DNA of 64,000 bases from Gnetum montanum (GCA_015680685.1 MNCI01001539.1:580387-644386), one strand, 5' to 3'; positions 5,505 to 55,070 are shown, numbered from the stretch's first letter. The notes: generated by a model from the sequence alone, not told the origin. Translations and numbers: made by a program.

Positions 5505-6683
5505 AGTTTATTTTTTGTTCTTTACTTTCTGCTCAGCATAGGTAGAAGATCCAGGGCCCTTTAGTTTACAGTTTTCAATTGGTATCAGAGCTAGGTAGCT
5601 CAAATTCTTGACAACAGATCTCTCCAGGATGGCCCAAAACAACGGGCCCAAAACAACGGATCCGTGTCTCTCCAAATTCCTGTATTCAATGGAGAAAATT
5701 ATGAATATTGGGCAATCAAGATGAGGACATTCATGATCTCACAAGATCTGTGGGATATTGTTGAAGGTGGCTTTCAAGATGCTGATCAAATTACATTCCA
5801 AGCCTTGACAGAAGATGAAAAAAATGAAGTCAAGAAGCTTCGGAAAAAGGATGCCAAAGCACTTTTCATCATTCAATCTGGGTTAGATCTGACAGTCTTT
5901 CCCAAAATAGTCATGCATCACACCAGCAAAGCTGCATGGGATGCACTGGAGATTGCATACAAGGGATCTTTGAAAGTTCGTGTTGTCAAGTTACAAGCCT
6001 TCAGGAAAGATTTTGAATCTCTGCAAATGCTAGATTCAGAAAATATCGAGCAATACATCAGCCGATTTCAACAAGTTCGAAATGGACTTGACTCCTGTGG
6101 AGAAACGCTTGAGGAAAGGCGTGCTGTTGAAAAGATCCTTCGAAGTGTGACCCGACGCTATGATCCCCTCGTCGTGGCTATTGAAGAAGCAAGAGATCTC
6201 GATAAGATGACCATGGTTGAGCTCGTAGGAAGCCTGAAGACATACGAGCAAAGAATTGCTGATCGTGAAGATACACCAGCCAATGCATTTCACACGCAAT
6301 TCCAGAGATCATCCAATCAACATCAACAATCCTCAAGTGGATCCTCCTTCAGAGGACGTGGACGCGGTCGCGGCAGATCTGGAGGTCGTGGTCGTGGACG
6401 ATCACCTCAATCAAATGATGGTAAGCATTGTGATTTCTGTGGTACCAACACCCACAATACTAATGAATGTTGGTCTAGGAAAAAGCATGAAAAGAAAGGC
6501 AAAGCAAAAATTGCCGAAGATGAAGGTCACCAACAAGGTGAACAATTGTTTTATACCGAAGAGGAGGAAAATCACCTCCTGCTCTCTACCAAGGCAACCG
6601 ATGCAAGCGACACCAACACGTGGTATGTGGATAGTGGGTGCAGCAATCACATGAGTGGAAACAAAACTCTCTTAATCTGCTAA
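5505..6683 (+). mobile_element. Truncated Ty1/copia: LTR end, PBS, gag and start of protease
   Basis: CA at 5576-77 then PBS TGGTATCAGAGC at 5580-5591; 339-aa ORF with FNGENYEYW, UBN2-like gag, CDFCGTNTHNTNEC knuckle, WYVDSGCSNHMSG. Confidence 0.92.
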
Positions 6684-8344: not shown

Positions 8345-8929
8345 GTAAGTACTGCCTTACTGTTGTCTCTAGTTTTTAATCTGTGCCAGTTAAAAGTGAA
8401 TTGCAATTTGCAAGTGATAGTCTTTTTAGTCTTGTTGCAGCTAGTAGAGGGCCAACTAACCAATGTTATCTGTTAGTTCTTTTTCAATATATCACACAAA
8501 TGACACGCTCTCTCTTTTTTTTAATCAAATGTACATCCCTGGTTGTATAGTGACTAGGTTATCAAAAAGATAATTCCATTTATAGAAAAACAAACCAAAC
8601 ACAATATAAACTATTTTCCATGTTTCTCTTCTAGAGATATAAATAAACAGCATTGTTCCAATTATAATTCCTCCACAATCTAAAATTTCATTCTTGTTAT
8701 GCTACAAACTGAAAAAGCTATGGGAGTGCTATCCACACCTAATTTTGCTGTTCTTTATAGTGATGCTGTTGCCAAGCCAACAAAAAATCATTAAGAGAAT
8801 TAGCTGCAGATTGTAACCTATGAGCATTACGTGTATGCCTATTCCGAATTTTCTGAATAAATGAGCAAGTTATAAAAAGATGATTAGCATTTTCTGTTGT
8901 TGAAGAATATAAGACACAACCTAGATTTT

Positions 8930-10378
8930 TTATAATGTTCTTCTATGCAAAATTGATTTGCGCATAGTTTTCCATGAAGCATCTTATTAGCAAAGAGACA
9001 AATGTGAGGAGTGAAAATAGGATTCTGAATGTCTACTGGATATTGCACTCTTTCCACGGGGCATAAAAGTGGTATAAGCAGTCTTTGTGAAGTATTTTGA
9101 TTTGTCACACTATTTCCACTGCTGATTGTACCAAGAAACATGCTAACAAAACCAAGGTCTTATAGATTGAAGCCCTCTCCAAATTCAAGACGGATTAGTA
9201 ATAGTAAGAGCCTTAATAAAGTCAATTTTCTTTCTCTTTAATATATAAAAGAGCATTTTATAAAAATTAACTGTTTTGGAGTACAACAATGGGTTTCCAG
9301 GGATGTTATATCAATTTAGGAATATGGTACACAAAATATTAAAATTATTGCATTTATGGTACCAACCCATTCTTATCAATTTACAACTTTTTAATTTTGG
9401 TAGCTTCAAAGGCTTGGGCAGTTGATTTCGATTTGATAAATGAGGCATTGAAATTAAGAGGAGAAGACTTATTCTTTTGTGCAAAATAACTAGTGGGTAG
9501 GTTTCTTCTATGCAAACTATTCCATAATGTTCTTTTGTGCAAAATATTGGCTAGTGGGTAGTTTTCCACGAAGCATCTTATTAGCAAAGAAACAAATGTG
9601 AGTCGTAAAAATGAAATTTTGGATGTCCACTGGATATTGCACTCTTTCCTGATCTATTACCATTTCCATTGCTGATTGTGCAAAGAAACATGCAAACAAA
9701 ACCAAATGTCTTATAGATTGAAACCCTCTACAAATTCTGGAGGGAGTAATAATAGTAGGAGCATTAACAAAGTAATTTTTTTAACATGTAAAAGAACATT
9801 TTATGAAGATTAAATGTTTTGGAGTACGACAATTAATTTCTAGGGATATTAGATTTAAGAATATGGTAGAGAAAATATTAAAATTATCGCATTTAGGGTA
9901 CCAACCCATTCTTGTCAGTTTACAACATTTCAATTTGGCTTCAACTTGGCTAGCTTAAAAGACTTGGTAATTGAATTCCATTTGATAAGTTAGACATTGA
10001 AATTAAGAGAAGAAGACTTATTCTTTTATGTCAAATATTGACTAGTGGGTAGTTTTCTTCTATGCAAAATATTCCATAATATTATTTTGTGCAAAATATT
10101 GACCAGTGGGATTTTTTCTTTTGTGTAAAATATTTCATAATGTTCTTCTGTGTAAAATATTGACCAGTGGGTAGCTTTCCATGAAGTATCCTATCAGCAA
10201 AGAGACAAATGTGAGGAGCAAGAATGAGATTTTGGATGTTCACTAGATATTGCACTCTTTCTATGGGACGTAAAAATGGTATAGGCATTCTTTGTGGAGT
10301 ATTTTGATCTATAACACCATTTTCACTACCAATTGTGCAAAATTACATGCTAACAAAACCAATGTTTTATAGACTGAA
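8930..10378 (-). repeat. About 600-bp tandem repeat (about 2.5 copies) derived from a LINE ORF2 3' region
   Basis: ccatgaagcatcttattagcaaagagacaaatgtgag-like block recurs near 8970, 9565 and 10180; minus strand gives PHICLFADRILHGKLPT (zf-RVT-like). Confidence 0.7.
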
Positions 10379-11760
10379 TGTCATGTCCCTATTCCCGAAT
10401 GGTGCTGTTACATAATGAAGATGGTATCCCCTCATAACTAATGATGTGATTATTGTAATAAGACCTCAAAGGGCAAATTGTAATTAAGAGTCAAAAGGGT
10501 GCGTTGTAATAACATGCATGTCTCTCAAGGTAATGTTTGGGGGTTTGACCTAAGGTATTTATACCCAACCATTAGAGGTCGTATAAGCATGGAGTTGTAG
10601 AGTTGATAAAGGTGAATAACAAGTGTTGTGTGAAGTGGGATAGGAAAAGGATTGACCATCCCTTCTGGTCGGTTGCAAGCCTAATCGTGGTGGTAGTGCA
10701 AGATAACCTCTAAGGGATGGATGCCTAAGGAAGATAACCACAAGGAATACTCAGATCATGACCCAGATACACTATTTCACATCAATAAAACATTCTTTTC
10801 TTTTTCCTTTTGCATTTTCATTGTTGTTTTCTTTACGCATAATGTTGAATGTTACACATTTGACATTTGCCATCTCATCTTCTTATGCATAATGTTTAAT
10901 ATAACGTATATTTGACTTTTGCCATGACATCGGGGAATGGGATGTCCCATTTTGTATCAGAGCAAATTGTGACACAAGGGCTAATCAGAACTAAGGGCCA
11001 ACTACAACTTAATGATGAACCATGGAGTTATGAACTAGGGAGAGTCATGGATCACCATTAGATGTGCCTTATATCCAAGATAATCCATGTAATCCATCTA
11101 AGCTAGAAGATACCTTTTCAGTGATTTTCATTGGCAAATGAGTTAGGACCACACATCTACAAGAGAACCATAACGTGTATCATGTCCAAGATAGATCCCA
11201 CTAACCAACAAGCTTCTTTCATGGATATCATCGACCAAAGGAGATTTCATTATGCCTCACCAAGATTCATCGATTGCAAGAGACATTGGTGAGACAAGAA
11301 TGCTATAAATGTTAATTAATTAAGGTCATTGTTAAGGTCCTCCCAGAAGGTTAGTAACTATGGCCTAAGTTGAGACTTATTGCCCCTAAACACCTAACCC
11401 TTGTAATTTAGAGTTATTCATTTTACCTAAGTCTTATGTATTGGTAAGTTTAATGAGGTGAACCTAACCATAAGATTATTTTATCTCTACCCAATTGATA
11501 AGGGTTATTTTCATGAGACTCATAGGGAAACCAATTCTTGGTGGTTAATATTGTGATGTCTTCCTTTGCTAACCCTACCCTTAGTACCTTGCTAGGGTAT
11601 AAACATGATCCAAGAGAATAGGCCTATATTATACTTGCCAAATAACAAGGTAAAAGTATTATTCTTGTCCAAGGATTGGTACATCATTTATAATCAAATC
11701 TAAGTAATCTCAAAGTCATTAGGTCGCCCATACGTCAGCCTAGTAATGTTAGTACAACAA
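10379..11760 (+). mobile_element. LTR (10379-10949), PBS and degenerate internal sequence of an LTR retrotransposon
   Basis: TG...CA ends with imperfect terminal inverted repeat (tgtcatgtccctattcccga / tcggggaatgggatgtccca), followed by ttgtatcagagc (tRNAi-Met PBS variant). Confidence 0.7.
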
Positions 11761-11985
11761 AATAGGCTATTTTGGTCCTCTCAATTTTAATGAGTGGGAG
11801 TTTCAAATTTTGAAGTACTATTTTGTTGAGCGGGAGTTTCATATTTTGAAGTACTATTTTGTTGGATGAGTGGGGTCCGCTCAAATTTTAATGAGCGGGA
11901 GTTTCAAATTTTTGAAGTTGGGACACTATTTATACATGTACCGGCATGCTCATTCCCTTGCCTTTGCAACTTCGGCTACTTGGTC

Positions 11986-12043
11986 GCATTGCCTAAACAC
12001 ACTAATGAGGGGTGAAAGTCCCCGAAAACATTTTGTATCACAA
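11986..12043 (+). ncRNA. Minimal type I hammerhead ribozyme motif, copy 1 (degenerate)
   Basis: ACACA-CTAATGA-GGGG TGAAAGT CCCC-GAAA-ACATT-T-TGTAT; core G5>A, stem III palindrome mutated. Confidence 0.75.
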
Positions 12044-12623
12044 NCTTTCTGTTTTTGGTTAGGTTTTAATCCTTTTGCAGGTTCTCCACGGGTTCTGATC
12101 ACGTTGCAGGATTATGCGGACCACAACATGTTTCTTCTTGATCCATGTTTTGACAACCGCCTTGCTTACGTTGGTCTTCTTGGTTGTGGTTTCTTTTGAA
12201 GCTGTTTTCTTCAGCTTCTTCACAGCCTCTAGCTGTTTCTTCTCCGGCGTCGTTGCAGCTCGTCACTCCGTTGCTGTTGAAGATCTTGTTCGTTGCTGTT
12301 TTTCAGCTGGACTTCTGCGTGCATGACATTCTCTGGTGTCGGACCCCTCATGTCCACCATTCAAACATGAGGGTTCCCCTAAACCCTTAGGACCCTTCGA
12401 CTCTTCCTTTAGATTCGATCTGTTGAATGTTTCATGTTTGCCTTTGAAATACTGCTTTGTAATAGTTTTGTCAGTACATTGTCCCACCCCCATCTCACCT
12501 TTGACGAGTGGGGTCCGCTCAAATTTTAATGAGCGGGAGTTTCAAATTTTTGAAGTTGGGATACTATTTATACATGTACTGGCATGCTCATTCCCTTGCC
12601 TTTGCAGCTTCGGCTGCCTGGCC

Positions 12624-12698
12624 GCATTGCCTAAACACATTGATGAGGGGTGAAAGTCCCCGAAAACGTTTTGTGTCATAATAGACGTTATGCAATGC
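12624..12698 (+). ncRNA. Minimal type I hammerhead ribozyme motif, copy 2 (C3>U)
   Basis: ACACA-TTGATGA-GGGG TGAAAGT CCCC-GAAA-ACGTT-T-TGTGT; stems I and II and palindromic stem III intact. Confidence 0.85.
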
Positions 12699-13748
12699 TT
12701 TGAGCTTTCTATTACTTTCTGTTTAACAATGTTTCTGTTTTACAGTATCTGCAATATTTCTCTCAGCCTCCCCGTTCTTTTCTTTGACGCACGAGATCAA
12801 ATTTCTAAAATTCTAATGTTTTTCTCTCTATCTCATTGCCTTGGAATTGCAGAGCCTTGCCTGACAGCGTCTTTCGCTATTCTTTGGATTCTAACCATTT
12901 TCAGATCTTTTTGTTTTTGGTTAGGTTTTAATCCTTTTGCGGGTTCTCCACGGGTTTTGATCACGTTGCAGGGTTATGCGGACCACAACATGTTTCTTTT
13001 TGATTCGTGTTTTGACAACCGCCTTGCTTATGTTGGTCTTCTTGGTTGTGGTTTCTTCTAAAGTTGTTTTCTTCAGCTTTTTCACAACCTCTGGCTTTTT
13101 CTTCTTCGGCGTCATTGCAGCTCGTCACTCCATTGCTGTTGAAGATCTTGTTCGTTGCTGTTTTTCAGCCAGACTTTTGCATGCATGACATTCTCTGGTG
13201 TCGGACCCCTCATGTCCACCATTCAAACATGAGGGTTCCCCTAAACCCTTAGCACCCTTCGGCTCTTCCTTTAGATCCGATCTGTTGAATGTTTCATGTT
13301 CGCCTTTGAAATACTACTTTGTAATAGTTTTGTCAGTACATTGTCCCACCCCCATCTCGCCTTTGATGAGTGGGGTCCGCTCAAATTTTAATGAGCGGGA
13401 GTTTCAAATTTTTGAAGTTGGGACACTATTTATACATGTACTGGCATGCTCATTCCCTTGCCTTTGCAGCTTTGAAAAACTTAATTATTTATTTATTTTT
13501 AGGACATTTAATAAAAAACTTAGAACGACAATATATTCCTAAGCATAAGTCCGATTGGGACAAAATTTGTACTGTTGGAATCATCTCAACAAGTACTGTG
13601 TTGGACATGGTTTTAGGGTCTTTTAGAATTTTAGAATTTTAGAAATTTGATCTCGTGCGTCAAAGAAAAGAACGGGGAGGTTGAGCGAAATACTGCAGAT
13701 ACTGTAAAACAGAAACACTATTAAACAGAAAGTAATAGAAAGCTCAAA

Positions 13749-13823
13749 GCATTGCACAATGTCTGTTGTGACACAAAACGTTTTCGGGGACTTGCACCCG
13801 TCATCAGTGTGTTTAGGCAATGC
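13749..13823 (-). ncRNA. Minimal type I hammerhead ribozyme motif, copy 3 (intact CUGAUGA/GAAA core, stem II closing mismatch)
   Basis: Minus strand: ACACA-CTGATGA-CGGG TGCAAGT CCCC-GAAA-ACGTT-T-TGTGT. Confidence 0.85.
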
Positions 13824-14610
13824 GGCCAGGCAGCCGAAGTTGTAAAGGCAAGGGAATGAGCATGCCAGTACATGTATAAATAGTGTCCCAACTTTAAAAA
13901 TTTGAAACTCTCGCTTATTAAAATTTGAGCAGACCCCATTCATCAAAGGCAAGATGGGGGTGAGACGATGTACTGACAAAACTATTACAAATAGTATTTC
14001 AAAGGCGAACATGAAACATTCAACAAATTGGATCTAGATGGCAGAGCTGAAGGGTGTTTAGGGTTTAGGGGAACCCTCATGTTTGAATGGTGGACATGAG
14101 GGGTCCAACACCAGAGAATGTCATGAACACAGATGTCTGGCTGATAACAGCAACGAACAAAGATCTTCAACAGCAACGGAGAGACGATTTGCAACGCCGC
14201 TGGAGAAGAAACAACCAGAGGTTGTGATGAAGCTGAAGAAAACAGCTTCAGAAGAAACCACAACCAAGAGGACCAATGTAAGCAGGGCGGTTGTCAAAAC
14301 ACGGATCAAGAAGAAACATGTTGTGGTCTGCATAATCCTGCAATGTGATCAGAACTCGTGGAGAACTTGCAAAAGGATTAAAACCTAACCAAAAATAGAA
14401 AGATCTGAAAATGGTTAGAATCCAAAGGACAGTGAAAGATGTTGTCAGGCAAGGCTTTGCAATTCCAAGGCAAAGAGATAGAGAGAAAAACATTAGAATT
14501 TTAGAAATTTGATCTCGTGCGTCAAGGAAAAGAACGGGGAGGCTAGGAGAAATACTGCAAAAACTGTAAAACAGAAACACTGTTAAACAGAAAGTAATAG
14601 AAAGCTCAAA

Positions 14611-14685
14611 GCATTGCACAACGTCTGTTGTGACACAAAACGTTTTTGGGGACTTTCACCCCTCATTAGTGTGCTTAGGCAATGC
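14611..14685 (-). ncRNA. Minimal type I hammerhead ribozyme motif, copy 4 (degenerate)
   Basis: Minus strand: GCACA-CTAATGA-GGGG TGAAAGT CCCC-AAAA-ACGTT-T-TGTGT; G5>A and G12>A. Confidence 0.75.
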
Positions 14686-17600
14686 GGCCAGGCAGCCGAA
14701 GCTGCAAAGGCAAGGGAATGAGCATGCTAGTACATGTATAAATAGTGTCCCAACTTCAAAAATTGGAAACTCTTGCTCATTAAAATTTGAGCGGACCCCA
14801 CTCGTCCAACAAAATAGTACTTCAAAACCATGTCCAACACAGTACTTGTTGAGATGATTCCAACCGTACAAATTTTGTCCCAATTGGACTTATGCTTAGG
14901 AATATATTGCCGTTCTAAGTTTTTCATTATATGTCCTAAAAATAAATAAATAATTAATATATTAAAATTGTTTTTGGCATAGGCTCTAATCATGAGGTAA
15001 AAATGCATTAAATGCTACTGGTTAGTTATAGCATTAAATGCAGTTATTTTTGTTAAGGTGAAAATGCAGTTGTAGCATAAAGAAGTCAGCAATCATCATT
15101 GCTGTGCTAGCTTGTATTTCTTTGAATGGATTTGCCTATATCCAATTTTAAGGATCACCATTGCATTTGTTGACTTTGTTCATTTTTGGGGTTAATGGTT
15201 AGCATGAGTGGGCAATGGAGGATATACATTTCAGTAATGTGGTGAATGGTGCTAAATCTATATGTTTCCATTTTGGTTTTATTGGTATATGTGAGCTTAC
15301 ATTTCAAACTTAAATTGTTGTGGCAAGAAAATAAAAAGGAGTTGCAACTTACAAATCTTTCAATGTGTGTACATGGCCAACGAAGATGGTGCCAACCTTG
15401 GCAGAGTAAAGGAGAGACTCTATGGCTTTGCACATGGACTAGCCCTCTCTCTGATACGGTTCATAAGGGGGCCATAATTTGGGTTTTGGAAGGATTGTAA
15501 GGATAAGCTCTAGGTGATGATGGATCCATAACATGGCAAATGGCGAAAACGAAAAGATAAATGCATAGCAATTGGCAAAGCATATATATACTTGAAGCTA
15601 AACATATTGAGTAGAGTCATGGTCAAAGTTTGTGTAAGAACCTAGCATGATAACGTGGACAACAACGACATCAAAAGAGTAGTAGAGGTTGGAGGTAGAG
15701 TTGCAGATTGGTAGGGCATGCACCATCAAGCATTGTAGGCTTTCAATGCATGGGGCATGAGAATGGGTATGCTTTCCATCTCATGATTTTTCACTATAAC
15801 CATCCATGGCTGATTGTTGGTAGTGCTTCCCATCGAGTGGCCAAATGAGTTTCATAGCAGTTGCTGGCTATTGGCATACGACAGGTCCCTTGGCAACAGA
15901 AACACATCGTGTGCTGTTGCCTTCACATGATTCAATGTGCTCTCGATCCTCTTATGACTTGCTGTAGCACCTATGGCCCTCCTATTACCTTCTACAGCTA
16001 AATGAAACCCTTGCCATTGCTCTGTGTTGCCACTCATATAGCACCTTGTTCACTGCGTTTGCCTTGCTTGCCATGCTACTTTATGCCCTTTTGCATGCCG
16101 CTACACTGTCTCTCCTGTGCCGCCCTTGTTGGAATCAAAAGCCCTTGTTGCATAACCAAGACTGTTGCTCCCTTCCCTTCCTCCAACATAATAGAGAAAG
16201 CCACTATGTTCCCAAAGATTTTAGGATGTTGTTCTCCTAGGACAACACGGTGACTTCTCATGTGCCGGGATTGGAGCAATCAAGAGCCTAGTTCTTGCTT
16301 GTGGAGAACAATTGGGCCCTGTCGTCCACCAACCTATTGATTGTTCTTGCAACTTCGTTAAGATGGTTGATGGTTGGATAGTACACTGAGGACTTGCCAC
16401 CAGCCTTGGAGGCTTGTTGCTATTGCTATTGTTCCTTAAGTTTCATTAGGCATTCAAACGCTTCTACCACCTTTGGTATCATCTCGAATGTTGGTGGTGG
16501 TAGTGGAGGTGGTGCTTCTTCTTGGAGCTTGGCAAGGGCATTATTCTTCATCATTTTCTACCAAGATGCGGCAAGGGCCTTGTGGATTATATTGTTGGAG
16601 TAGGACTTGTAGGTTCTGGATCGGGAGATCTAAGTTCTTCCCCGTCTTCCTCCTCAAGAATTAGTGGTTCATGCAAAGGTTTGCAAACAGAGGCTTGAGA
16701 TTGTTCAACCTTAGTCCTCCTTGGTCTATAGAGCTTGGATCACAATTGCCCCAACATGATAAGCTGTGAAATCTCCTAAAAAATTAAGTGAGTTCCCCTA
16801 GGCATCATACTACCTTTGCAAAATTTCCGCATGAAAACAACGATAAGTACATACTTGGGGGACACTTGAAAAAAGCATCCTCACAATCATTGAATCATGG
16901 TGTGCATGGGAATGTATGAAAAAGGTAGAAATATTTAAATAACTACCAAATACACTACATGCATACCTAAATTGGTGTTTGTCCCATACGACTAAGTTAC
17001 AAGACACCAGGCTTGAATAATAGCTAGAACACCAAGGATAGGAAGAATTGTAAAAATATTATCAATATGTTCATTAGGGTAAAAAATGATAAAGTTTCGC
17101 TTGTTTTTGAAGACTAGAGGCAAGGAAAGCAAGAAAAATTAGAGAGGGCAAAGTGTGGGATGTGTTTGGGAGGCCCCCACACTTTATAGTGGCCTCTTGC
17201 TGTAGGGGGTTCACTAGTGATGCCCCTGCATTGATGTAGGGGGTGCATCAGCACACCCTTCCAAGCAAAGGAAAACACCAAACTTCTCTCTCTTGACCTC
17301 AAACTTACCTTTTGCCGCCTCTAGAGCTTCACACAAGGTCCTCAACATGCTAAATTCATCCTGAATTGACCTCACAAGACATACAAGGAGCAAGGCAACA
17401 AGAGCATTGTAAACTTATCTCAAATGACATCATAGATCATGGGAAATAAGTTGATTGATCAATATATGCATTCCATGATCCCAATACTAGAAAAGAGGGG
17501 TTAGAACAACTAGAGAACGGTTATAGCTCCAAAAATAATGAAATAGAGGCACAATGGAGGTGAATCGATAGGGGTTGTCATGATCAAACCTTGGAGAACA

Positions 17601-18689: not shown

Positions 18690-21425
18690 TGTACAAACAG
18701 ATAATTGTGGAATTACATTGCTCTTCCCATAACCTCTTCTCTCTTTTCCCTTTCTTCTATTCTAAACACGAAGGAGAGAAGAAAAGATTGGAAAAATAAT
18801 TGTCTCTCTCTCTCTCACATTCATTTTGAATCAACAATTACAACAATTTATAGGAAAGAATTACAATAGGAAATCTACTAAATAAGGAACAAGAAAGCTG
18901 GAAAATAACTGACAGATATTGATGATAGAAATTGATTTAGAGAATCAACTAATTTTGGTAAGTTAACCCATAAAATCAGGCCCTAATTGATCAGACTTTA
19001 TTCTGACTTTCTAACACTCTCCCTCAAGTTGGTGAATAGATATGTATCCTCCTAGCTTGCTAACAATAGAATCAAAGCTTGGTTTGCATAAGGCCTTCGT
19101 GAGAATATCAGCTTTTTGCATCTTGGTAGAAATCTAGGATAGAGCAAATGTTCCATTGTTAACTTTGTTTTTTTATGAAATTCCTATCAATTCTTACATG
19201 CTTCATATGATCATGTTGGATTGGATTTTGGATGATATTGATGGTAAACTTACTGTCGCTAAACAACCTCATCGTACCACTTTGGGGTATCTTGAGATCT
19301 TCCATCAACCTTTGTAGCTAAATGAGTTCACAAATTCCTTATGCTATAGTTGTATATTCAGCTTCTGCCCTACTACGTGCGACAACAAATTATTTTTTGC
19401 TTCTCCACATTACTAAGTTTCCCCAAACCTTGGTACAATACCTTGTAGTAGACTTGCTGTCTTCAATTACTTTGGCCCAATTTGCATCAACAAAACCAAC
19501 AATGTTCCTTTTATTGTACTTCTTGAATAATAGTCCCTTCCATGGGTAGCCCTTTAGATACCTTAGAATCTGATTTACAACATCTTGGTGTCTCTTTGTA
19601 GGAGCATGCACGAACTGGCTAACAATACTTACGCTGAAAGCAATATCTGGCCTAGTGAGAGACAAATAGATGAGTTTATCAACCAAGCGTTGATAGCTTT
19701 CTCGATTTACAAGAGGATCTTCTTTAGGAGTCTTTTGTTTCTAGTTTCATTTGCTAGTCTACACCTCATCTTGCCAGTCTCTTTGAGTAAATCCATGATA
19801 TATTTCCTTTGGGAGATGAAAATCCATTTCTTGCTTCTAGTAATTTCCCTTCTCCAAAAATACTTCAGTCGACCAAGATCTTTGACTCTGAACTCTGCTT
19901 GGAGCTTTCTTTTGAGATCTTCAATCTCATGATCATCATCTCCTGTAATCACTGTATCATCAACATAAACAATAAGGGTTGATCTTTTACCATGCTTCCC
20001 TTCTTTAACAAATAAAGTATGATTGGCTTGTCCTTGTTCATATTGAAGTTGCTTAATCACACCACTAAATTGAGTAAACCAGCCTTGGGGAGATTGTTTG
20101 AGTATGTAGAGTGACTTTTTTAATCTACATACTTTACCCGTACCTTCTTGAGATTCAAAAGCAGGTGGTATCCTCATGTAAACTTCTTCTTCCAATGTAT
20201 CATTTAGGAAGGCATTTTTGATGTTGAGTTGATGTAGCCCCCAATCCAGATTTGCAGCTAAAGACAACAAAACCATAATAGATTTGAGTTTTGCCAAAGG
20301 AGCAAATGTTTCTGCATAGTCTATCTCATACATCTGGGTGAACACTTGTGCCACAAGTTTGGCCTTGTATCTTTCAATGTTGCCATCATGACCATACTTG
20401 ATAGTAAACACCCATTTGCTTCCCACAAGTTTCTTTCCTTTAGGTAGGTGGACTATTTCCCATGTTTCATTGTCTTCCAAAGCCTTCATTTCCTCCATCA
20501 CAGCTTCCTTCCATTTGGAATCTTCCAAAGCCTCAAAGATATCCCTCGGAAATTGTGTCTCGTCAACCTTTGAAAGAAATGCTTTGTAATTACATGATAA
20601 CTTGGAGTATGTGAGATAATTAGAAATGAGATATTTTACACATGACCTCACCCCTTTTCTAACCGCAATTAGAAGATCCAAGTCATCAATCTCTTCATGA
20701 TCATTCACCACCTCAAAATGCTCTTGTATGCCTCCATTAGTTGGGTCTATCAATGGTTTGGGCTCTTGGTTTTGTTGAGGAGCTTGTGGCCATCTATAAT
20801 GTCCCAGAAAGTTGGTTTTGGGTGTGATTCTCCCCCTAGATTCGAATGTGACTCTTGGATTGATTTGACATGAGGTGTGACATGATTTTCTGATGTGAAC
20901 TCAAGCATAGCAATTGGTAGAGATATGATTGAATCCCAATGTTGCTCTTTTGTAGGTTGATTCTCCCCATGAAGAGTAACATTGGGATAAAAGAGTTGGT
21001 GTTCAAGAAATGTGACATCACATGATACAAAAACATGTTTTAAAGGAGGGTAGTAGCATTTATACTCTTTTTGTGTAGTAGAATACCCTAAGAATACACA
21101 CTTGAGAGCTTTTGGATCAAATTTTCCATGATTTGGTTGAGTATTGTACATATATGACACATCCAAAGATAGGAGGTGGAAGAGTGTTGAGAATTCGTGT
21201 AGAAGGAAAGGCTTATAAGAGAAGACTTAGTGGAGTTTGATATTGAAGAGTTTTAGATGGTAGTTGATTAATGATATATGCAGAGGTGAGAATAGCTTCT
21301 CCCTAGAAGGATTGAGGAACATAGCTAGTAAACATAATTGATTGAGCTACCTCTAGAAGATGTCTATTTTTTCGTTTTGCAACCCCATTTTGTTGGGGTG
21401 TATAGGCACAAGAACTTTGCAGGAT
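18690..21425 (-). mobile_element. Degenerate Ty1/copia 3' half (INT, RT, RNase H, PPT, 3' LTR)
   Basis: YTPQQNGVAKRKNRHLL, KCVFLGYS, LHQLNIKNAFL, LIVYVDD, TRPDIAFSVS, GFVDANWA; PPT gagggagag followed by TGTT at 19016. Confidence 0.92.
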
Positions 21426-21838: not shown

Positions 21839-24800
21839 TGTTATAATTAGATCTGAAAACACACTACAAATGCTCTAGAGAAATTATTAGAACCCTACAG
21901 ATCTGAATAAATCATTAGAGGTAAAATATTGCATTGTAGCAGGTCAAGAAACACTATAAATCACTCTCAAAACGTTTTAAACTCTAGCAAACATTTGCTA
22001 TGATAACGAAATGAAAGCAGAATGAAAACAGTAAAAATAGCACAAGAACACAGAGAGTTATGTGGTTCGGGCCATTTTTACCCTATTTCCACAACAATGG
22101 TGATCTGCTTTCTATTCTTCTCAAATCTTCAGGACACAAGCCATCCTTGTAATTTTTCCAAACACCCAATCTGTTATTCCAACAGATCTCAAATCAACAC
22201 CAACAAGACTTATGTCTCCAAGGTAAAATCTTGATACAATGCTTTCACTTCAAAGTACACCCAAAAGGCTACTCCAAGCCTTCTATTTATGAAGAAACAT
22301 GAGGACCAAACCTCAATTCTAATACATGTGGGATAAAACACATCCCCACATCAAATGCAACATAAAAGGAAATACAACAATTAATGTATTTGTCTTCATT
22401 TTTCCAACAAACTCCCCCTTGAAGACAAATCCAACCAACCTTTAAAAGATGTGCACTTCTGATTAAACTTCAGTTATCTCAAGCTTCTTCCTACAGAAAA
22501 TGTGTTTTTCAGCTATCACTGGTTTTGTTAAAGCATCAGCAACGTTGAGCTTTGTATGGACCTTTTGAACATGCACCAAGCCATCCTCTATGATTTCTCT
22601 TATGAAGTGGAATCAGACATCTATATGTTTTGTCTTGGCATGAAAGGCAGAATTCTTTGCAAGATGGATTGCACTCAAACTATCACAAAACACAGCATAC
22701 CTTTGTTGTTTTAATCCAAGAGACTGCAAAAATCTCTTCATCCATAACATCTCCTTGCATGCTTCTGTGAGGGCTACGTACTCTGATTCAGTTGTAGATA
22801 AAGTTACTAGTGGTTGTAGACGTGACAACCAACTCACTGCTGCACCACCAAAAATAAATGTGTACCCTGTAGAAGATCGTCTTGTATCATGATCAGCAGC
22901 AAAGTTTGCATCTACAAAACCTTCAATGTGCAGATTAGCATCTCCAAAACATAAGCAATGCGCTTTTGTGCCCTTTAAATATTTTAAAATCCATTTGACA
23001 GCTAACCAGTGATTCCACCCATAGTTGGTCATAAATCTACTAACTACTCCAACGGCATAAGCAATATCAGGACGTGTACAAACCATGGCATACATCAATG
23101 ACCCAACAGCAGAAGTATATGGGATATTTTTAACCTTTTCAAAATCCTCTTTTGACTTTGGACAGTCCTTCTTTGATAAATTAAATTGTGCTGAAAAAGG
23201 TGTACTTACAGGTTTTGCATCCTCCATGTTGAAACGCTTTAGAACCTTTCCAATGTAATCTTCCTGACTCAACCACAGCTTCTTCCTTTTTCTGTCCCTG
23301 TAAATATTCATACCAAGAATTTTCTTTGCCTGTCCCAAATCCTTCATAGCAAATTCTTTGCCCATTTCCAATTTTAAATGTTTTATCTCTGCTATATCAT
23401 TTCCAGCAATTAGCATATCATCAACATACAACAACAACACTGTAAATTTACCTGAAATATCTCCAGAAAAATACACACAGTGGTCTAGGTTGTTTTTCTG
23501 ATAAGATAGCTTCTTCATGAAAGTATCAAACCTTTTATACCACTGCCTAGGGGCTTGTTTCAAACCATATAAACTCTTTTTTAGTCTACAAACCAGACCT
23601 GAACCTTGTTGTTCTTCATACCCTTTTGGCTGTTTCATGTAAATTTCCTCCTCCAAATCTCCATGGAGGAATGCTGTTTTTATATCAAGTTGTTCCAACT
23701 CTAAGTCCATGCAGGCCACCAATGATAGCACTAAACGTATAGAAGACTGTTTTACCACTGGAGAAAAAATTTCTTGAAAGTCAATACCTGGTTTCTGTGC
23801 ATAGCCTTTCACCACCAACCTAGCCTTGAAACGTTTTTCCCCATTTGCCTCTGATTTAATTCTGTATAGCCACCTGCACTCCAAGGGTTTTCTCCCTTTT
23901 GGCAACTGAACTAGCTCCCAGGTTTTGTTCTGTTGGAGTGATTCCCATTCATCATTCATAGCTGCCTTCCACTTTGTGGCATCAACACATGTCATGGCTT
24001 CCTTCACTGTTTCTGGTTCACCACTATCGCTGTAAAGTACATAATTCAATGAGGGAGAGTACCTGTCAGGAGGTCTGGTAGTTCTGGTTGACCTTCTAAC
24101 CCAATGAGACACATCTGTAGCTTGTTGTTCATCATCTTCTACCTCATTTTCTTGCTGTCTTGCATTTTCTCCTTGCTGTCCTAAGTTCTTAGCTTGCTGC
24201 CATGTACTTTCAGCATGTTGTCCAAAGTTTCCAGATCTGGAAAATCCATGAATTTCATCATTTTCAATTTCTTTAGTCACGCTAAAAGGAGTCCTTATGC
24301 TTTCTGAGCCATTTCTGTCCTTGTCTTTCTTTTGCAGCTCACTAAACATCACATTTTCTCTGAATTTAACGTCCCTTGATCTCACTACACGTTTCAATTC
24401 AGGATCCCAAAGTCTGAATCCTAACTCATCTTCTCCATATCCAACAAATATGCAACTTTTAGCCCTGTCTTCCATCTTAGTTCTGTTTTCCTTTGGAATA
24501 TGCATAAATGCCTCACATCCAAAAACTCTTAAATGACTGTATGAAACGTTTTTACCTTTCCAAACAACTTCTGGAACAGCATTATCAATTGAAGAATGTG
24601 GAGACCTGTTCACCAAATATGCAGCAGTCATAACTGCCTCTCCCCAAAATGTCTTAGGTAGGCCTGCACCTGAAACCATTGTTCTAGCACGATCCAGCAA
24701 TGTTCTGTTGCATCTTTCAGCAACTCCATTTTCCTGTGGTGTACTAGGAGGGGTACGAATGTGCCTAATTCCTTTGATGTTGCAAAAATCAGCAAATACT

Positions 24801-25625
24801 TTAGAAGTGTACTCCCCACCATTATCAGTTTGCAAACATTTTATTTTCAGACCTGTTTCATTTTCTACTCTTGCAACAAATGTTTTGAAAACTGAAAACA
24901 CTTCATCTTTTGATTTCAGCATATAAACCCAAACCTTCCTTGTACAATCATCTATGAAAGTTACAAAATAAATAGATCCACCAAGAGAAATGGGATTCAT
25001 AGGACCACAAACATCAGAATAAACCAATTCTAACTTATTTTTCTTTCTGTTGTCCAAATCCCTACGAAAGTTTACTCTCCTAGATTTTCCAACTAAACAG
25101 TCTTTGCAATCAGTTTGAGCATAAGAAAATACAGGAATGAGAGTTTGATTTTGAAGTACCTTTAAGCTTGACCAGCCAATGTGTCCAAGACGTCTATGCC
25201 ACACTTCAGAATTTTCTGTATCAGAAACTGTTGCAATAGAGTTGCATGAATCTGCCATCAATGTATATAAGCTGCCCTCCTTCTTTCCTTTCAGAATGGT
25301 CATGATTCCCTTGGAAATCCTCCAATGTCTATCTCCACTACTAAAATTCAGACTTGAATCATCCAGTTGTGGAATTGAAATCAACTTCTTTGTACCACCA
25401 ACTTAGATTAGATCTGAAAACACACTACAAATGCTCTAGAGAAATTATTAGAACCCTACAGATCTGAATAAATCATTAGAGGCAAAATATTGCGCTGTAG
25501 CAGGTCGAGAAACACTATAAATCACTCTCAAAACATTCTAAACTCTAGCAAACATTTGCTGTGATAACAAAATGAAAGTAGGATGAAAACAATAAAAATA
25601 GCACAAGAACATAGAGAGTTATGTG
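21839..25625 (-). mobile_element. Ty1/copia with near-intact pol (GAG-pre-integrase, INT, RT, RNase H), 3' LTR 21839-22409 and partial upstream LTR about 25407-25625
   Basis: 923-aa ORF 22613-25384 (WHRRLGH, SDVCGP, TDNGGEY, YVDDML, DANFA); PPT aagggggag; LTR TGTT...AACA; LTR sequence repeated at about 25407-25625 up to the N at 25626. Confidence 0.96.
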
Positions 25626-25626
25626 N

Positions 25627-28600
25627 ATTTGGTTCCTCTTCCTCTCATTGTTGCCATGCCTCCCTCATGCTCCTCCTAGAGCTCCTCTTGTATTTGTTGT
25701 CATAGCTCCTCTTCTAGCTCTTGCCTAGTCGTTGCCTCTGCCAAATTTCGTTGCACCCATTTTGCCCTCGCCACCTCCCTTAGCTGTTCGAGTTCTTCGC
25801 TGGAACTCCTCCTTCCTCCATCTCAGCCATTCTAGCTCCAGTTGAAATTTGTCCTGTGCTTCTCCTTATGTGCTCGCTCTACTACTTCCAAATTTGCCAA
25901 CTGCCCTATTGTTCTTGACATCCCCACTCTTTCATCCCCTCTCCCTTGCGCATTCAAAGTTCTAGCCCCCCCCACCCACCCCCTGTCCTTGGGGCCCTTC
26001 TTGCCTCTCTTGGGGCCGCAACGACTTGCCCACCTTCTTCGCCCTAGTAACCGTATGGTTTGTGCTCGTCTTTGAAGCCACCTCCTTCGACTCACTCAAA
26101 TCGATAGAGGTATCTACCACCGATGGTGGGACGCACCACCTTTGTTGTCATTTGTACACCGCCTGCACCATTGGAGCCCCAGGTGGCCCTAGGACCCTCC
26201 TTGGTGGTGCATGTCCCCTCACCGCCTACCAAAGCACAAGAATGAGCCCCGAGTGGGGCCCCCACCTTCTTTGGTGCAACACCCCCAAAAAGTAACGAGA
26301 CAGGTTCACCACAATTCCCCTCTAAAGGCACTGCAGGAAGCCAAAATGCATCCCCAGCAGCTTTCACGTGTTGCCCGAGTGGACGAAAATTCGGTCCACG
26401 AGCATCGCAGCGTCCTACTACATAAGCTCCAAAGCAAACTTAGGGACTTGTTCACTAGCCGTCTTGGGCATTATCCTTCGGAAGAACTCCCGTGCATCTT
26501 GTAGTCCTCTTACCTGCAAGTACTTGGCGATGGTTGCCTTAATGAGCATAGTTATCACCCCTTGAAACCAAGTGATATTCCCAAGCCAATTGTTATAGAA
26601 TGGCCCGTCCTCTAGGTCAAGGTTCCCTCGGCTCTAGCATTGGGGCCCAACCCATCTTGTCCACTAGATGCCACATAACCGAATTAGTGCAGTAATTCTC
26701 ACATGATGACTCGTATGTTGGAGTTACCCCCATGGCCACCTGCGCTTCCCTCCATGCTCAAAAACCTGTAGTTGCCACCTGTGCCAGTAATAGTGGAGCA
26801 ATGTCCTTGAAAATTTGGAAGTTTATGGTTTGCCACAATTGCCAGAGGATGGTTGCGGTAGGTGAGTCCTTGTCTAGCATAATCGGTAGCGAAATTCACG
26901 CAGCTTGCTTCACCCATGCCAAATAAGTACACTACCATGCAAGATGTTCCACTATTTCCTCCCTTGCCATGCAGAGGGGACATGTGGCGTTCACCCGTAA
27001 CCCCCTCCTCCACAACATGTGTTGCACGAGGATAGCACCATGTCTCATTAACCATAGAAAAAATTTAATTTTTTTAGGGAGCTTGCCTTGCCATAATTGT
27101 TGCCACCCCTTGACAACAAGGTATTGATGCTTGATTAGCTGCGTTGGCTATGCATTCATTAGCCTCAACAGTAAAATCCTTTGCATGTGCATCACTAAAG
27201 AGCACCAAAAACTTGAATCACTACTCACGGCCTTCCATTGCTGGTACTTCTGACGCGTGATTTGCACCCGCTAGGCCGGGTAACGATCTTGATCACAAAA
27301 TTGTCGTAGCAACCCTTGAAGCCCCATGGGCTAGACATTAGCAAAGCTTAGCAGTCCTAGACCTCTCGCTTGCTTTGGTCTTGCCACGGTACCCAATGCC
27401 ACTAGATGCATCCTACCATTCCCTTTACCCCCTGACCATGTGAAATTCCGCACAATGCAGTTGACTTTCTTTGTCACCTCAATCGGAAGGGAGGTGGTAG
27501 ATGCAATGAATCTAGCCATAGCCTACAGAATTGATGAAGCTAGAACCAACTTCCCCACCCTAGAAAGAAACCGAGTAGTCTAGTGACTAACTCTTTTTTG
27601 CATTCTTTTGATTAGGGATTCCCAAACCTATTTTCTGTGCCAATCATAAAGAGGTAATCCTAAGTAGGTATCCTCCCTAGACCCCAGTAAGACCTCCAAC
27701 AATTGGACAATTCTCCACCGTATTGTTTGCTCAACATTAAGCAAATGTACCAGGGGGCCCAATCTCATCGGCCATTTGGAGGAGAGCCTAGTTAATAGCA
27801 AGTACTTGGGGAATCATTACCCTAGTGAACAAGAACATATCATTAGCATAGTGTTCTACCAGGCAGTGCACACCCCCAATGATTAGGCCTCTAACCCCTT
27901 TTGACTTGCAATATGTGCTCATGGCATTCATCACAAGAATGAACAGATAGGGTGATAGGGGGTCCCCTTGTCTTAACCCCCTTTTGGGGGACGTGAACCC
28001 CCATAGTCCTCGCGCCCCCCTACCCACCCAAAATCCAAGAAGAATGCACTTGATTGCTATATATGTAGGCACAATTTCACAAAACGTGGGTGAAATTCTT
28101 ACATAACATGATTTGCTATAGGGCACTTTAGGAAACTGTGTCATACACCTTAGTTATGTCTAATTTCAAACATATGCCTAGAAACCTCGTTAATCGAAGT
28201 GAGTGCAGCACCTCCTGCACTAGAAGAATTTGATCTTGCAAATATCTACCTTTGACAAAACCAACATGTTGTTTTCCAACTAGGTGCTGCAGCATGGACG
28301 CCAGCTGTGCCACCAACATTTTTGAAAGGAGTTGGATCAAAGTGTCACACACCCCAATAGGATGAAAGTGTGTTGGGCTTAAGGAGTTTGATGACTTTGG
28401 GATCAACACCAGTTGTGAGTAGTTAATCTCACATCTCACTTGTCCCCAAAATAACATCTCATTGAATGCTTCCAAGATATTTTCCCCCATCTCATTGTAA
28501 AATGTCCGAAGAACTTCATCGGCCACCCATTAGGACTTGGTGACCTTCCCCGCTTCATGGATGCCAACGCCCCCTCCAACTCACCGCTAGTAAAGAGCAT

Positions 28601-53369: not shown

Positions 53370-55070
53370 CCACTATGAAAGTTTACATTAAAGAATTAGA
53401 AGGCTTCGTTGTCAAAGGAGAAGAGAACAAGGTATGCAAGCTAACTAAAGCACTCTATGGTTTAAAACAGGCCCCACAAGAGCCAAGTCTCATAGAATAA
53501 ATGAATATCTCTTAATGGCTGGATATAAAACTTGCACATTTAAGCCCATACTACATTACAAACATGTTGGAAATGATTTTATCTTGGTTTCACATTATGT
53601 TGATGATTTGGTATTTTGTGGGAATTTTGAAATCTTGGTTGCTGAGTTCAAACATGATATGATGAAAGAATTTGAATTGAAAAACTTGGTCTTGCTTAAA
53701 TATTTTTTGGGAATTCAAGTAGACCAATATGAAGATTATTTGAAAATTCATCAAACTAAATATGCTCAAACAATTCTAGAAAAATATGGCATGAAAGATG
53801 AGAAAGTTGTTTCTACACCATTGACTAAAGATTGCAAACTCATTTTGAAAGACAATACTCCACTTATTGATGCCTCTCACTCTAGAGGAATAATAGGTTC
53901 ATTGAGATTTTTTTGTCAAAGTAAGCTTGATGTAGAATTTGCTACTTCCTAGTTATCAAGATATGTGAGCTTCCCATTTGAATCTCCTTAAGCATGTGTT
54001 CAAATTCATCAAATACAGTTTTGATTTTGGGCTGAATTTTGCGAAAGGTGATGGAAAATTTCATGCATATCTAGATGTAGACAAGGTTGGTGACATTAAT
54101 GATAGAAAATCTACTTTGGGTTCTTTCATTTTTCATGGGCTAAACCTAGTATATTGGAATGCAAGAAAGTAAATTTTATTTAGTTTATCATCATGTGAGG
54201 CCGAAGTTGTTTCAATGTTTGAATGTCTTCAACATATATATGGTTCAAAGAGCTTCTCACCCACATTGGCTTTGAGCTAAGCACTTCCACTAAATTGTTT
54301 GTTGATAATACAACAACAAAAAGTGAAAGCACATAAGCCTCATGGACTACTTCATAGAAGATGAAGTTAAAGAAGGCACCATCAAACCCACATATTTGGA
54401 GACTGAATATCAATTAGTTGATATACTTACTAAGCCCATTCATGCAATTAAGCTTCAGCAACGTATGGGAGAAATTAGCATCATAAAGATAATAAATGAA
54501 GACAGGTCTGTTTGTAATCATCCCCATTACACACTAAAGGAGGGATTGTTAGTTATAGTGTGAATGGGATGTTCATTACATTTTCAAGTTGATGTCTTCT
54601 TATTGCTTTTTCATTCCAAGTTTTTAGTCAGTTTAATTTTCAAGATTAAAGTCATGGATAGGTCAATAGTTATGTACCATGTAATAAAACTTTCCATAAA
54701 TGGAAAATGTATCGTATGTATATAATGATCACGTAACATGCACAACATGACATAAAAGGATCAATCAAACTTATAAATAGAGGCGCCTACCTTCATATTA
54801 AAGGTTCGCAAGCTCATTTATCTTGTTCATTTTTCTAGTTTCATTGTTCAAGCTCATTATAGAATACTTTCATTTTCAGCAATAGAAGAGAAGACTATCT
54901 GAAGTTTCTCTCAAGAATCTCTCATTTCTTCAGAGTCTTTCACAACTCTCTCACATTTACTGTCACAAATTCAGATTTTTTCATTTCTTTTATATCTCTC
55001 ATATTTCAATCTGATTTCACATTTCTTTCAGGTTAATGCTTTGGAGTCTCACATGTTTTTGCATATAACA
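53370..55070 (+). mobile_element. Degenerate Ty1/copia RT-RNase H, PPT and 3' LTR (54547 to about 55070)
   Basis: KALYGLKQAP, HYVDDL, LLKYFLGI, DRKSTLG, QLVDILTKP; PPT aaaggaggga followed by TGTT. Confidence 0.88.

Follow-up and report, generated by a model that had tools for sequence, protein, structure and literature searches.

A tandem and inverted array of 862-bp repeats in Gnetum montanum as the probable remains of a hammerhead retroelement lacking a reverse transcriptase

The question raised by this locus is what kind of element left behind four old copies of a non-coding repeat of about 862 bp, all of them mutated and each bearing one motif resembling a hammerhead ribozyme. The copies make up a block of about 3.2 kb (positions 11774-14967) within a 64-kb stretch of Gnetum montanum DNA, hereafter the window. 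Minimal type I hammerheads, in which helix III is absent or palindromic and which act as dimers, have been described from tandem and inverted insertions of Penelope-like elements and from non-LTR retrozymes (PMC4209133, PMC7761336, PMC7229834, PMC8557442). We consider the block to be probably (at roughly 0.6) an old, dead and rearranged insertion of a hammerhead retroelement without a reverse transcriptase (RT), akin to these Penelope-type or non-LTR retrozyme elements.

The block is built from two arrays lying tail to tail, together with a duplicated segment termed X. The plus-strand array (11774-13472; pairwise identities 93.6-98%) was delimited by blastn of unit B against the window and by the repeat families D1 and D3. 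It starts with partial head repeats (11774-11852), followed by unit A, in which 11862-12043 (unit positions 1-182) and 12045-12499 (unit positions 408-862) are separated by a 225-nt internal deletion and an N at 12044, then by the full-length unit B (12500-13361) and finally by a third unit truncated to unit positions 1-111 (13362-13472). Segment X (13471-13614, plus strand) is unrelated to the unit body and bridges the truncated plus array and the minus array, with a filler at 13615-13630 preceding the latter. The minus-strand array (13631-14827, read from 14827 to 13631), defined by the inverted-repeat families I1, I2 and I4 and by blastn, contains a leader (14827-14810), the full-length unit D (14809-13948) and unit C (13947-13631), which is truncated at unit position 317. 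Directly 5' of this leader in the hammerhead-sense orientation lies X' (14824-14967, minus strand), an inverted copy of X with 94-96% identity to it (inverted-repeat family I7 and blastn).

The plus and minus arrays are 91-94% identical, and the units diverge by 6-9% from one another. The unit has a period of 862 bp and a GC content of about 42%, and its hammerhead-like motif occupies unit positions 136-177, a location that is identical in every unit copy long enough to include it (2.1 units on the plus strand and 1.4 on the minus strand). Successive motifs are spaced 862 and 638 nt apart, the shorter distance being due to the deletion in unit A. The repeat search and blastn thus confirm the tandem and inverted 862-bp repeat reported in an earlier note on this DNA, with two of the four motif copies on each strand.

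Each motif is 42 nt long, and a 35-nt pattern allowing up to three mismatches matched exactly these four sites, against an expectation of 0. Pattern search and alignment recovered the anatomy given in the earlier note. The topology is type I with an open-ended helix I (ACACA/UGUGU, 5 bp in motifs B, C and D, including a G.U wobble in D), helix II is GGGG/CCCC (4 bp, with the 7-nt loop UGAAAGU, in A, B and D), and helix III is the palindrome AACGUU (in B, C and D), with UUU as the cleavage triplet. Motif B (12635-12676, plus strand) has C3>U (UUGAUGA) as its sole defect, with helices I, II and III intact, and is predicted to be cut after 12671, the same position as predicted before. Motif C (13812-13771, minus strand) retains all 11 core bases (CUGANGA ... 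GAAA) and carries G10.1>C, which gives a C.C mismatch at the closing pair of helix II, as well as A>C in loop 2; its predicted cut falls between 13776 and 13775. The core is changed by one or two substitutions in each of A, B and D. The changes in motif A (11997-12038, plus strand; predicted cut after 12033) are all G>A: G5 in the core, one base of the helix III palindrome (now AACAUU) and one base of helix I, on its 3' strand. In the core of motif D (14674-14633, minus strand; predicted cut between 14638 and 14637) both G5 and G12 are replaced by A, and A>G at the outer pair of helix I leaves the wobble.

Measured against a hammerhead descriptor, the number of defects is one in B and in C, two in D and two to three in A. 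The strict form of the descriptor (core, helices I and II and U16.1-H17, with no defect allowed) had no match in the 64-kb window, and these four sites were the only matches there when up to two defects were tolerated. The lesions are expected to impair or abolish activity, so that the locus should not self-cleave efficiently; all four local ribozymes look non-functional.

The lesions are nevertheless informative with regard to what the copies descend from. They are copy-specific, and six of the eight are G>A or C>T, mostly at CG/CHG sites. Since the lesions vary from copy to copy and are predominantly of the deamination type, the ancestor that we infer is a complete type I hammerhead, and it is very probable that a complete minimal motif of this type, with a dimer-type palindromic helix III, was present in the ancestral unit. 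The same spectrum prevails over the whole unit, where singleton changes comprise 34 G>A and 29 C>T versus 6 A>G and 7 T>C, and where sites that split 2:2 show star-like patterns (AD 2, AC 2, AB 1). Taken together, the deamination-type singletons and the star-like patterns support independent decay from an intact ancestor. The complete consensus core claimed in the earlier note holds for this ancestor, reconstructed from four sequences with one core position tied, but not for the plain majority consensus from MAFFT, which reads CUAAUGA. The tied position is G5 (G in two copies, A in two), which has to be polarised by the mutation spectrum; this favours an ancestral G over A by roughly 30:1. Within the motif, 8 of 42 columns are variable, compared with 7 of 57 upstream. 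The motif is thus no better conserved than its flanks, and there is no sign of selection at the locus. As all four ribozymes are damaged and the units are 6-9% apart, the locus represents a fossil and not an active source.

With regard to coding capacity, no Pfam domain, including RT and GIY-YIG, was found in unit ORFs of at least 70 aa on either strand, nor was any RT remnant detected in any frame, which agrees with the previous statement that the unit lacks RT and GIY-YIG ORFs. The ORFs that do occur are low-complexity products of a T-rich strand. One of 123 aa, open in both full-length units, had no homologue in a protein search and looks like such a by-product. A tRNA search of the unit gave no tRNA and no tRNA-like part, the unit contains no tRNA-Met primer site (the nearest tRNA-Met-like sites, at 5580 in a copia element and at 10952, both lie outside the repeat), and no LTR pair was found around the block; an LTR-retrozyme reading was rejected on these grounds. 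The units do contain a telomere-complement block, (CCCTAAA)x2, at 14057-14070 on the minus strand, which is the hammerhead-sense strand of unit D, and a pattern search gave 12/14 versions of it at 12377-12390 and 13239-13252 on the plus strand. These are the only such matches within the window. The block lies about 573 nt downstream of the predicted cut site, and its candidacy as a Terminon-type priming site was rejected because it is not adjacent to that site (PMC6431247).

One close likeness in motif anatomy and layout is to the minimal hammerheads that Penelope-like elements and Terminons carry (Cervera & de la Pena 2014, PMC4209133; PMC7761336, PMC6431247). These are likewise of type I with a 5-bp helix I and a further closing stem, their helix III is absent or a small palindrome so that two copies are needed for activity, and they occur both in tandem and at distances of a few hundred bp on opposite strands, within complex tandem or inverted insertions; the head-to-tail plus inverted layout of the present block resembles Penelope-like insertions (PMC8557442). 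The differences are that helix II is a canonical 4 bp here, whereas metazoan minimal hammerheads typically have 6-8 bp and a bulge, that the motifs are neither separated nor flanked by an RT or GIY-YIG ORF, that the telomere-complement block of Terminons is immediately downstream of the cut site whereas here it is about 570 nt away, and that the host of this minimal motif is a seed plant. In plants, Penelope hammerheads have been described only as canonical, non-minimal motifs in Selaginella (PMC7761336, PMC4209133). The unit lacks both the RT ORF and the placement of the telomere-complement block expected of an autonomous Penelope-like element or Terminon.

The units could instead be terminal pieces (pseudo-LTR or 3') of an autonomous Penelope-like element, forming a severely 5'-truncated array in which the motif would be an ordinary pLTR hammerhead. 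The pLTRs of Penelope-like elements do contain hammerheads, and insertions of these elements form partial tandems accompanied by truncated copies in inverse orientation (PMC4209133, PMC8557442); tandem and inverted partial units are what the locus displays. We nonetheless regard such an origin as unlikely, since random 5' truncation would not be expected to yield shared unit boundaries and an exact 862-nt period, since not even a remnant of RT was detected in the unit frames, and since in endonuclease-less Penelope elements the telomere-complement block follows immediately 3' of the hammerhead (PMC6431247).

A second alternative is that the repeat is an ordinary satellite, foldback or unknown transposon that resembles a hammerhead by chance, and that 'repairing' the motif across four diverged copies overstates the match. 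None of the present copies is free of defects, and by chance about 0.2 matches with at most one defect are expected per 64-kb window. The relaxed descriptor, when defects are disallowed, gave one match in 40 Mb of Markov-random sequence, which extrapolates to about 3 chance matches over some 57 Mb of sequence from this genome, and G5 is tied. Moreover, the covariance-model check suggested in the earlier note came out negative, as the Rfam hammerhead models gave no match in the whole window at the gathering score, in a 3.8-kb region at E<=10 or in two 76-nt slices. Minimal Penelope-type motifs were themselves first found by relaxed RNAmotif descriptors and not by models of the Rfam type (PMC4209133). 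The local folds are not significantly stable either (z-scores of -1.7, -1.4 and +0.6), the natural copies being no more stable than shuffled sequences. Against this, the ancestor is a single sequence, for which a defect-free match is expected only about 0.003 times per window, and the requirement for a 6-nt palindromic helix III lowers the chance rate about 70-fold further; none of the Markov-random matches had a palindromic helix III of at least 6 nt. The motif also occurs once per unit in a tandem repeat, is flanked by a perfect 7-bp closing helix, and has lesions that match the general deamination spectrum. A chance resemblance therefore appears improbable.

The predicted folds place motif B in an extended RNA domain (12604-12698, plus strand). 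This domain contains the hairpin GCAGC-UUCG-GCUGC (12604-12617), a side hairpin of 5-6 bp with one compensatory pair between copies, and the 7-bp closing helix GCAUUGC/GCAAUGC (12624-12630 with 12692-12698), which encloses the hammerhead and is predicted in all three of the copies that retain it. As helix III is a bare palindrome without a loop, a single motif cannot close it alone. RNAcofold gave -26.5 kcal/mol for a domain-swapped dimer of the inferred ancestral motif versus -22.0 kcal/mol for two monomers (2 x -11.0). A monomeric helix III formed with a second ACGUU downstream was rejected, as the cut site and the helix I strand then fall in the loop, or position 17 becomes a G. The natural monomer of 862 nt folds with its 5' and 3' ends paired through helix I and the closing helix, at a z-score of -3.4 that is not strand-specific (-4.8 for the antisense).

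Drawing on this anatomy and on what is known of Penelope-type and retrozyme hammerheads, we propose that each unit of about 862 nt originally bore one complete minimal type I hammerhead on the same strand. Two motifs on a multimeric transcript would pair via the palindrome and swap the 3' strands of helix I, giving a double hammerhead. In the resulting monomer, helix I and the closing helix would juxtapose the ends in a geometry favouring circularisation by the host tRNA ligase, and an RT acting in trans, most plausibly that of a Penelope-like element, would copy the RNA into head-to-tail cDNA arrays. The earlier suggestion of a non-autonomous, ribozyme-bearing retroelement is supported in part, by the very probable ancestral hammerhead, the lack of an ORF and the Penelope-like insertion layout (PMC8557442); the present copies are all defective. 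Among the features that count against the proposal, tail-to-tail arrays with a duplicated X differ from the typical head-to-head layout of Penelope elements, and a unit of 862 nt is two to five times the size of described non-LTR retrozymes. Integration of cDNA copied as a multimer from an exogenous viroid-like or satellite circular RNA (retroviroid-like) and later rearranged would also account for head-to-tail non-coding units with one ribozyme each and a highly self-paired monomer, but is very improbable, because plant viroid-like RNAs and retroviroid-like elements are much smaller and use type III motifs, often in both polarities (PMC7761336, PMC11722881), whereas the motif here is of type I and on one strand only, Rfam finding no ribozyme on either strand in the same searches.

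The proposed retroelement shares with metazoan non-LTR retrozymes (Cervera & de la Pena 2020, PMC7229834; Li et al. 2026 preprint 10.64898/2026.07.22.740005) the RT-less, non-coding head-to-tail repeats with one same-strand type I hammerhead per unit and neither LTR nor tRNA-Met primer-binding site, and with those of amphibians a weak helix III that makes dimeric motifs necessary. The route proposed for them leads from multimeric RNA through self-cleavage and circularisation by tRNA ligase to tandem cDNA, with Penelope-like elements as partners (PMC7229834; 10.64898/2026.07.22.740005). They differ in being confined to animals and in their length of about 150-450 nt, a range that both the 862-nt unit and its deleted 638-nt form exceed. 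Circular RNA has been shown for the animal elements and is a prediction for the plant unit. The newt satellite 2 and Schistosoma SM-alpha repeats (PMC7761336) are likewise tandem in the genome, and their type I hammerheads have an unstable helix III and undergo double-hammerhead cleavage. Their motifs, however, are canonical, with contacts between loop 1 and loop 2, and of proven activity, and their units measure about 330 nt and are present in very high copy number. Plant LTR retrozymes (Cervera et al. 2016, PMC4918200; PMC11722881) have in common with the present unit a plant host, non-autonomy, ribozymes 600-1000 nt apart and an RNA predicted to be highly self-paired. In contrast to the type I motif, the absence of LTRs and of a tRNA-Met site and the lower GC content seen here, they carry type III hammerheads in LTRs of about 350 bp, a tRNA-Met primer site and a polypurine tract, with GC above 55%, and complete elements occur in dicots only.

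Described genomic hammerhead retroelements are thus divided into type III LTR retrozymes of dicots and type I non-LTR retrozymes of 150-450 nt in animals, and seed-plant Penelope elements have been reported only in conifers (PMC7761336, PMC11722881, PMC4209133, PMC10473749). We tentatively raise the possibility, which we hold to be somewhat doubtful, that a gnetophyte-like seed-plant lineage hosts a family of RT-less non-LTR retrozymes of about 860 nt whose minimal type I hammerheads are of the dimer type, that endonuclease-less Penelope-like elements mobilise this family, and that younger copies elsewhere in the genome still yield unit-length linear and circular RNAs. If so, a retrozyme class so far described only in animals would extend to plants, and among them to a group of gymnosperms from which Penelope elements are said to be absent. 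An 862-nt type I unit in a gymnosperm would blur the above division, would support the notion of retrozymes as reduced Penelope-like derivatives, and would suggest that large circular RNAs processed by ribozymes have a source in plants. The locus by itself being a fossil, its value lies in providing a probe sequence for intact family members. A degenerate 28-nt motif pattern had no match in metagenome and viral contigs, and an invariant 22-mer taken from immediately 5' of the motif was not found in contigs of metagenomes and prokaryotic genomes.

As to the surroundings, for which the earlier note gave an intronic location, no exon-like ORF with a Pfam match was found between 6.7 and 19.5 kb of the window. 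The RTs present in the 64 kb are of the copia RVT_2 and LINE/R2-like RVT_1 types, and none is a Penelope RT; RVT_1 fragments at 27.8-28.5 kb, considered as a nearby Penelope RT, matched R2 and LINE-1 ORF2 best and were rejected. The neighbours of the block are copia and LINE elements, and the copia proteins of the window are most like Welwitschia transcripts, as in a gnetophyte-like gymnosperm.

The map of the block (11774-14967) is based on a reading of positions 11500-15300 and on a comparison of unit B, the full plus-strand unit used as reference (12500-13361, +), with the whole window. The plus array opens with two partial head pieces (11774-11852, +), followed by unit A, in which 11862-12043 (+) corresponds to unit positions 1-182 and 12045-12499 (+) to 408-862; it has an internal deletion of 225 nt and an N at 12044. 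After unit B comes a third plus unit that ends at unit position 111 (13362-13472, +), then a 144-nt segment unrelated to the unit, termed X (13471-13614, +), and a filler sequence of 16 nt. On the minus strand lie the truncated unit C (13947-13631, unit positions 1-317), the full unit D (14809-13948), whose short leader extends to 14827, and X', an inverted copy of X (14824-14967, 94–96% identical). Repeat finding concurs: spacings are 862 and 638 nt, and the arms are 91–95% complementary. Together with the unit B comparison it bears out, on both strands, the 862-bp tandem and inverted repeat described in the earlier note. The same comparison revealed no further family members outside the block in the 64 kb.

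With regard to the array edges, TRF reports a 36-bp tandem repeat (11784-11864, 2.2 copies) made of unit-head pieces at the 5' edge of the plus array. A leader, 'TTGAAGTACTATTTTGTTGGA', is common to this edge and to the start of the minus array, and the 3' end of X is similar to it (AAGTACT...TTGGA). Read in the hammerhead sense, X comes after the truncated plus array and, as its inverted copy, before the leader of the minus array, so that the order is leader-units-X in the plus copy and X-leader-units in the minus copy. The differing placement of X could be explained equally by a DNA-level rearrangement or by a longer composite repeat consisting of X, leader, two units and the 111-nt stub.

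A 35-nt pattern allowing up to 3 mismatches found exactly four sites in the 64-kb window, against an expectation of 0. Including helix I, these are motif A (11997-12038, +), motif B (12635-12676, +), motif C (13812-13771, -) and motif D (14674-14633, -). The layout, ACACA / CUGAUGA / GGGG-UGAAAGU-CCCC / GAAA / ACGUU / U, predicted cut, UGUGU, is by its sequence that of a putative type I hammerhead, with helix III reduced to the loop-less palindrome AACGUU and UUU as cleavage triplet, just as the earlier note had them. In motif B the cut is predicted after position 12671. The lesions it reported in each copy are also seen. Motif A has G5>A plus one G>A each in the palindrome and the 3' strand of helix I; motif B has C3>U alone; motif C has an intact core, but G10.1>C produces a C.C mismatch at the closing pair of helix II, and loop 2 has A>C; motif D has both G5>A and G12>A. 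A strict descriptor found no defect-free copy in the window, and a descriptor tolerating up to 2 defects returned the same four sites only (B 1, C 1, A 2, D 2). The four-copy observation is real, with the two caveats that every copy is damaged and that position G5 is tied 2:2. The covariance-model scan proposed in the earlier note was negative: on both strands Rfam was blank for every ribozyme class, in the whole window at gathering score, in a 3.8-kb region at E<=10 and in two 76-nt slices. Scans for relatives came back empty, both with a degenerate 28-nt motif pattern in metagenome and viral contigs and with an invariant 22-mer just upstream of the motif in metagenome and prokaryotic genome contigs.

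The claim that the consensus core is complete stands only after G5 is polarised by the mutation spectrum, since the plain majority consensus from MAFFT reads CUAAUGA, G5 being split between A+D and B+C, a point absent from the earlier note. Over the whole unit, singleton differences comprise 34 G>A and 29 C>T as against 6 A>G and 7 T>C, and transversions number 16. Spread evenly over AD (2), AC (2) and AB (1), the 2:2 site patterns indicate a star-like history of the units. Of the eight changes within the motif, G>A or C>T account for six, of which five lie at CG or CHG sites, the methylated contexts in plants. Because two independent G>A changes at G5 are ~30 times likelier than two A>G on a star tree (calculated from the singleton counts), and the functional base is favoured 3:1 at the remaining five lesioned positions, the ancestral motif is accepted as very probably complete.

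RNAalifold on copies B, C and D predicted both helix I and helix II; in addition it gave a closing helix of 7 bp (GCAUUGC/GCAAUGC) that embraces the entire motif, and a side hairpin in which one pair is compensatory (C-G to U-A). When the natural copies were folded, the closing helix was predicted in all three and an upstream GCAGC-UUCG-GCUGC hairpin in B and D; local fold energies were not better than those of shuffles (z -1.7, -1.4 and +0.6). Cofolding two inferred motifs gave a domain-swapped dimer at -26.5 versus 2 x -11.0 kcal/mol, in which the palindromes are paired and each UGUGU pairs with the ACACA of the other copy; the modelled dimer would have double-hammerhead geometry. In the predicted fold of the natural 862-nt monomer, which runs from the predicted cut in D to that in C, the two ends are brought together by pairing in the closing helix and in helix I (z -3.4), but this is not strand-specific evidence because the antisense folds at least equally well (z -4.8). 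A TATA-like TATTTATA (12565-12572 and equivalents), a possible internal promoter, is conserved upstream of helix I in each of the five unit heads, at a distance of ~63 nt.

Could the resemblance to a hammerhead be due to chance? The present copies are not individually compelling, because random 64-kb sequences yield 0.2 matches at up to 1 defect and 1.45 at up to 2. For the ancestral motif we used a relaxed descriptor (helix I 5 bp, helix II at least 4 bp, 0-10 nt from GAAA to U16.1, H17) on 40 Mb of random sequence from a first-order Markov model of the window. It gave 1 defect-free match, or ~0.003 per window, and zero when a palindromic helix III of at least 6 nt was required. Over ~57 Mb of this genome, chance would be expected to supply ~3 relaxed matches, and ~0.04 with the palindrome requirement. 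In view of this Markov rate, and since the motif occurs once per tandem-repeat unit with a perfect 7-bp helix around it, we consider a chance resemblance improbable.

All unit pairs differ by 6–9%, tandem neighbours included, and X and X' by 4–6%, which indicates that the whole structure is of similar age throughout, with neutral decay ever since. Conservation is no higher in the motif than in its flanks (variable columns 8/42 vs 7/57). An assembly foldback artefact is excluded by the divergence between the arms.

No Pfam match was obtained for block ORFs of 70 aa or more, in agreement with the earlier statement that the unit contains no RT or GIY-YIG ORF. A 123-aa ORF open in both full units had no detectable homologue; its translation is hydrophobic and of low complexity, from a strand with 39% T. 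The unit contains no tRNA-like part. Near the block, between 6.7 and 19.5 kb, no exon-like ORF with a Pfam match was found that would back the intronic position given in the earlier note.

Minimal type I hammerheads with helix III absent or a small palindrome, active as dimers, are known from Penelope-like elements and Terminons. They are placed there in pLTRs and occur in tandem or, at distances of a few hundred bp, on opposite strands as well (PMC4209133, PMC7761336); Penelope-like insertions also take the form of partial tandems accompanied by truncated copies in inverted orientation (PMC8557442). In animals, non-LTR retrozymes lack an RT and form tandem units of 150-450 nt that bear type I hammerheads; they are expressed as circular RNA, and Penelope pLTRs are their presumed source (PMC7229834; preprint 10.64898/2026.07.22.740005). 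By analogy, the Gnetum element would work in the manner of Penelope elements or non-LTR retrozymes, but differs from them in host, unit size (862 nt) and its canonical 4-bp helix II. Among plants, canonical Penelope hammerhead motifs are described in Selaginella (PMC4209133), and seed-plant Penelope elements are reported in conifers only (PMC8557442, PMC10473749). Plant retrozymes, which have high GC and a tRNA-Met site, bear type III hammerheads within LTRs (PMC4918200, PMC11722881), and the Gnetum element does not belong with them: no LTR pair was found flanking the block, and no tRNA-Met primer site inside the unit. The best available reading is a non-autonomous hammerhead retroelement, to which we assign a probability of about 0.6. 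Within this reading, cleavage, circles, retrotransposition and a Penelope link are inferred. The locus itself is a fossil, and the interest lies rather in the wider family to which it points.

On the hammerhead-sense strand, a (CCCTAAA)x2-like block is reminiscent of the telomere-complement stretches in Penelope elements that lack an endonuclease. Unit D has it as a perfect CCCTAAACCCTAAA (14057-14070, -), units A (12377-12390, +) and B (13239-13252, +) as a 12/14 match, and the window holds no other match of this sort. The block, which is in a hairpin-rich stretch, is simply recorded here because the predicted cut site lies ~570 nt upstream of it, whereas in those elements it comes immediately downstream (PMC6431247).

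Upstream of the block are unrelated repeats (8895-10378; periods 61 bp and ~600 bp) and a tRNA-Met-like site with one mismatch (10952-10963). No Penelope-type RT was detected in the 64-kb window, which is rich in transposable elements, with copia gag and pol and a LINE/R2-like RT. The latter is a fragmented RVT_1 reverse transcriptase (27788-28526, -), whose closest solved relatives are R2 and LINE-1 ORF2; the ORF pieces adjoining its fragments yielded no endonuclease domain. Ty1-copia elements lie at 22613-25384 (-), 19707-21166 (-), 5664-6683 (+) and 53515-53952 (+). Taken by themselves, the copia proteins suggest a plant host, probably a gnetophyte-like gymnosperm: among 5.8 billion proteins, the top matches of a 923-aa copia pol ORF were two transcriptome proteins of Welwitschia mirabilis (identities of 72% and 56%), as compared with ~52% identity to angiosperm proteins.
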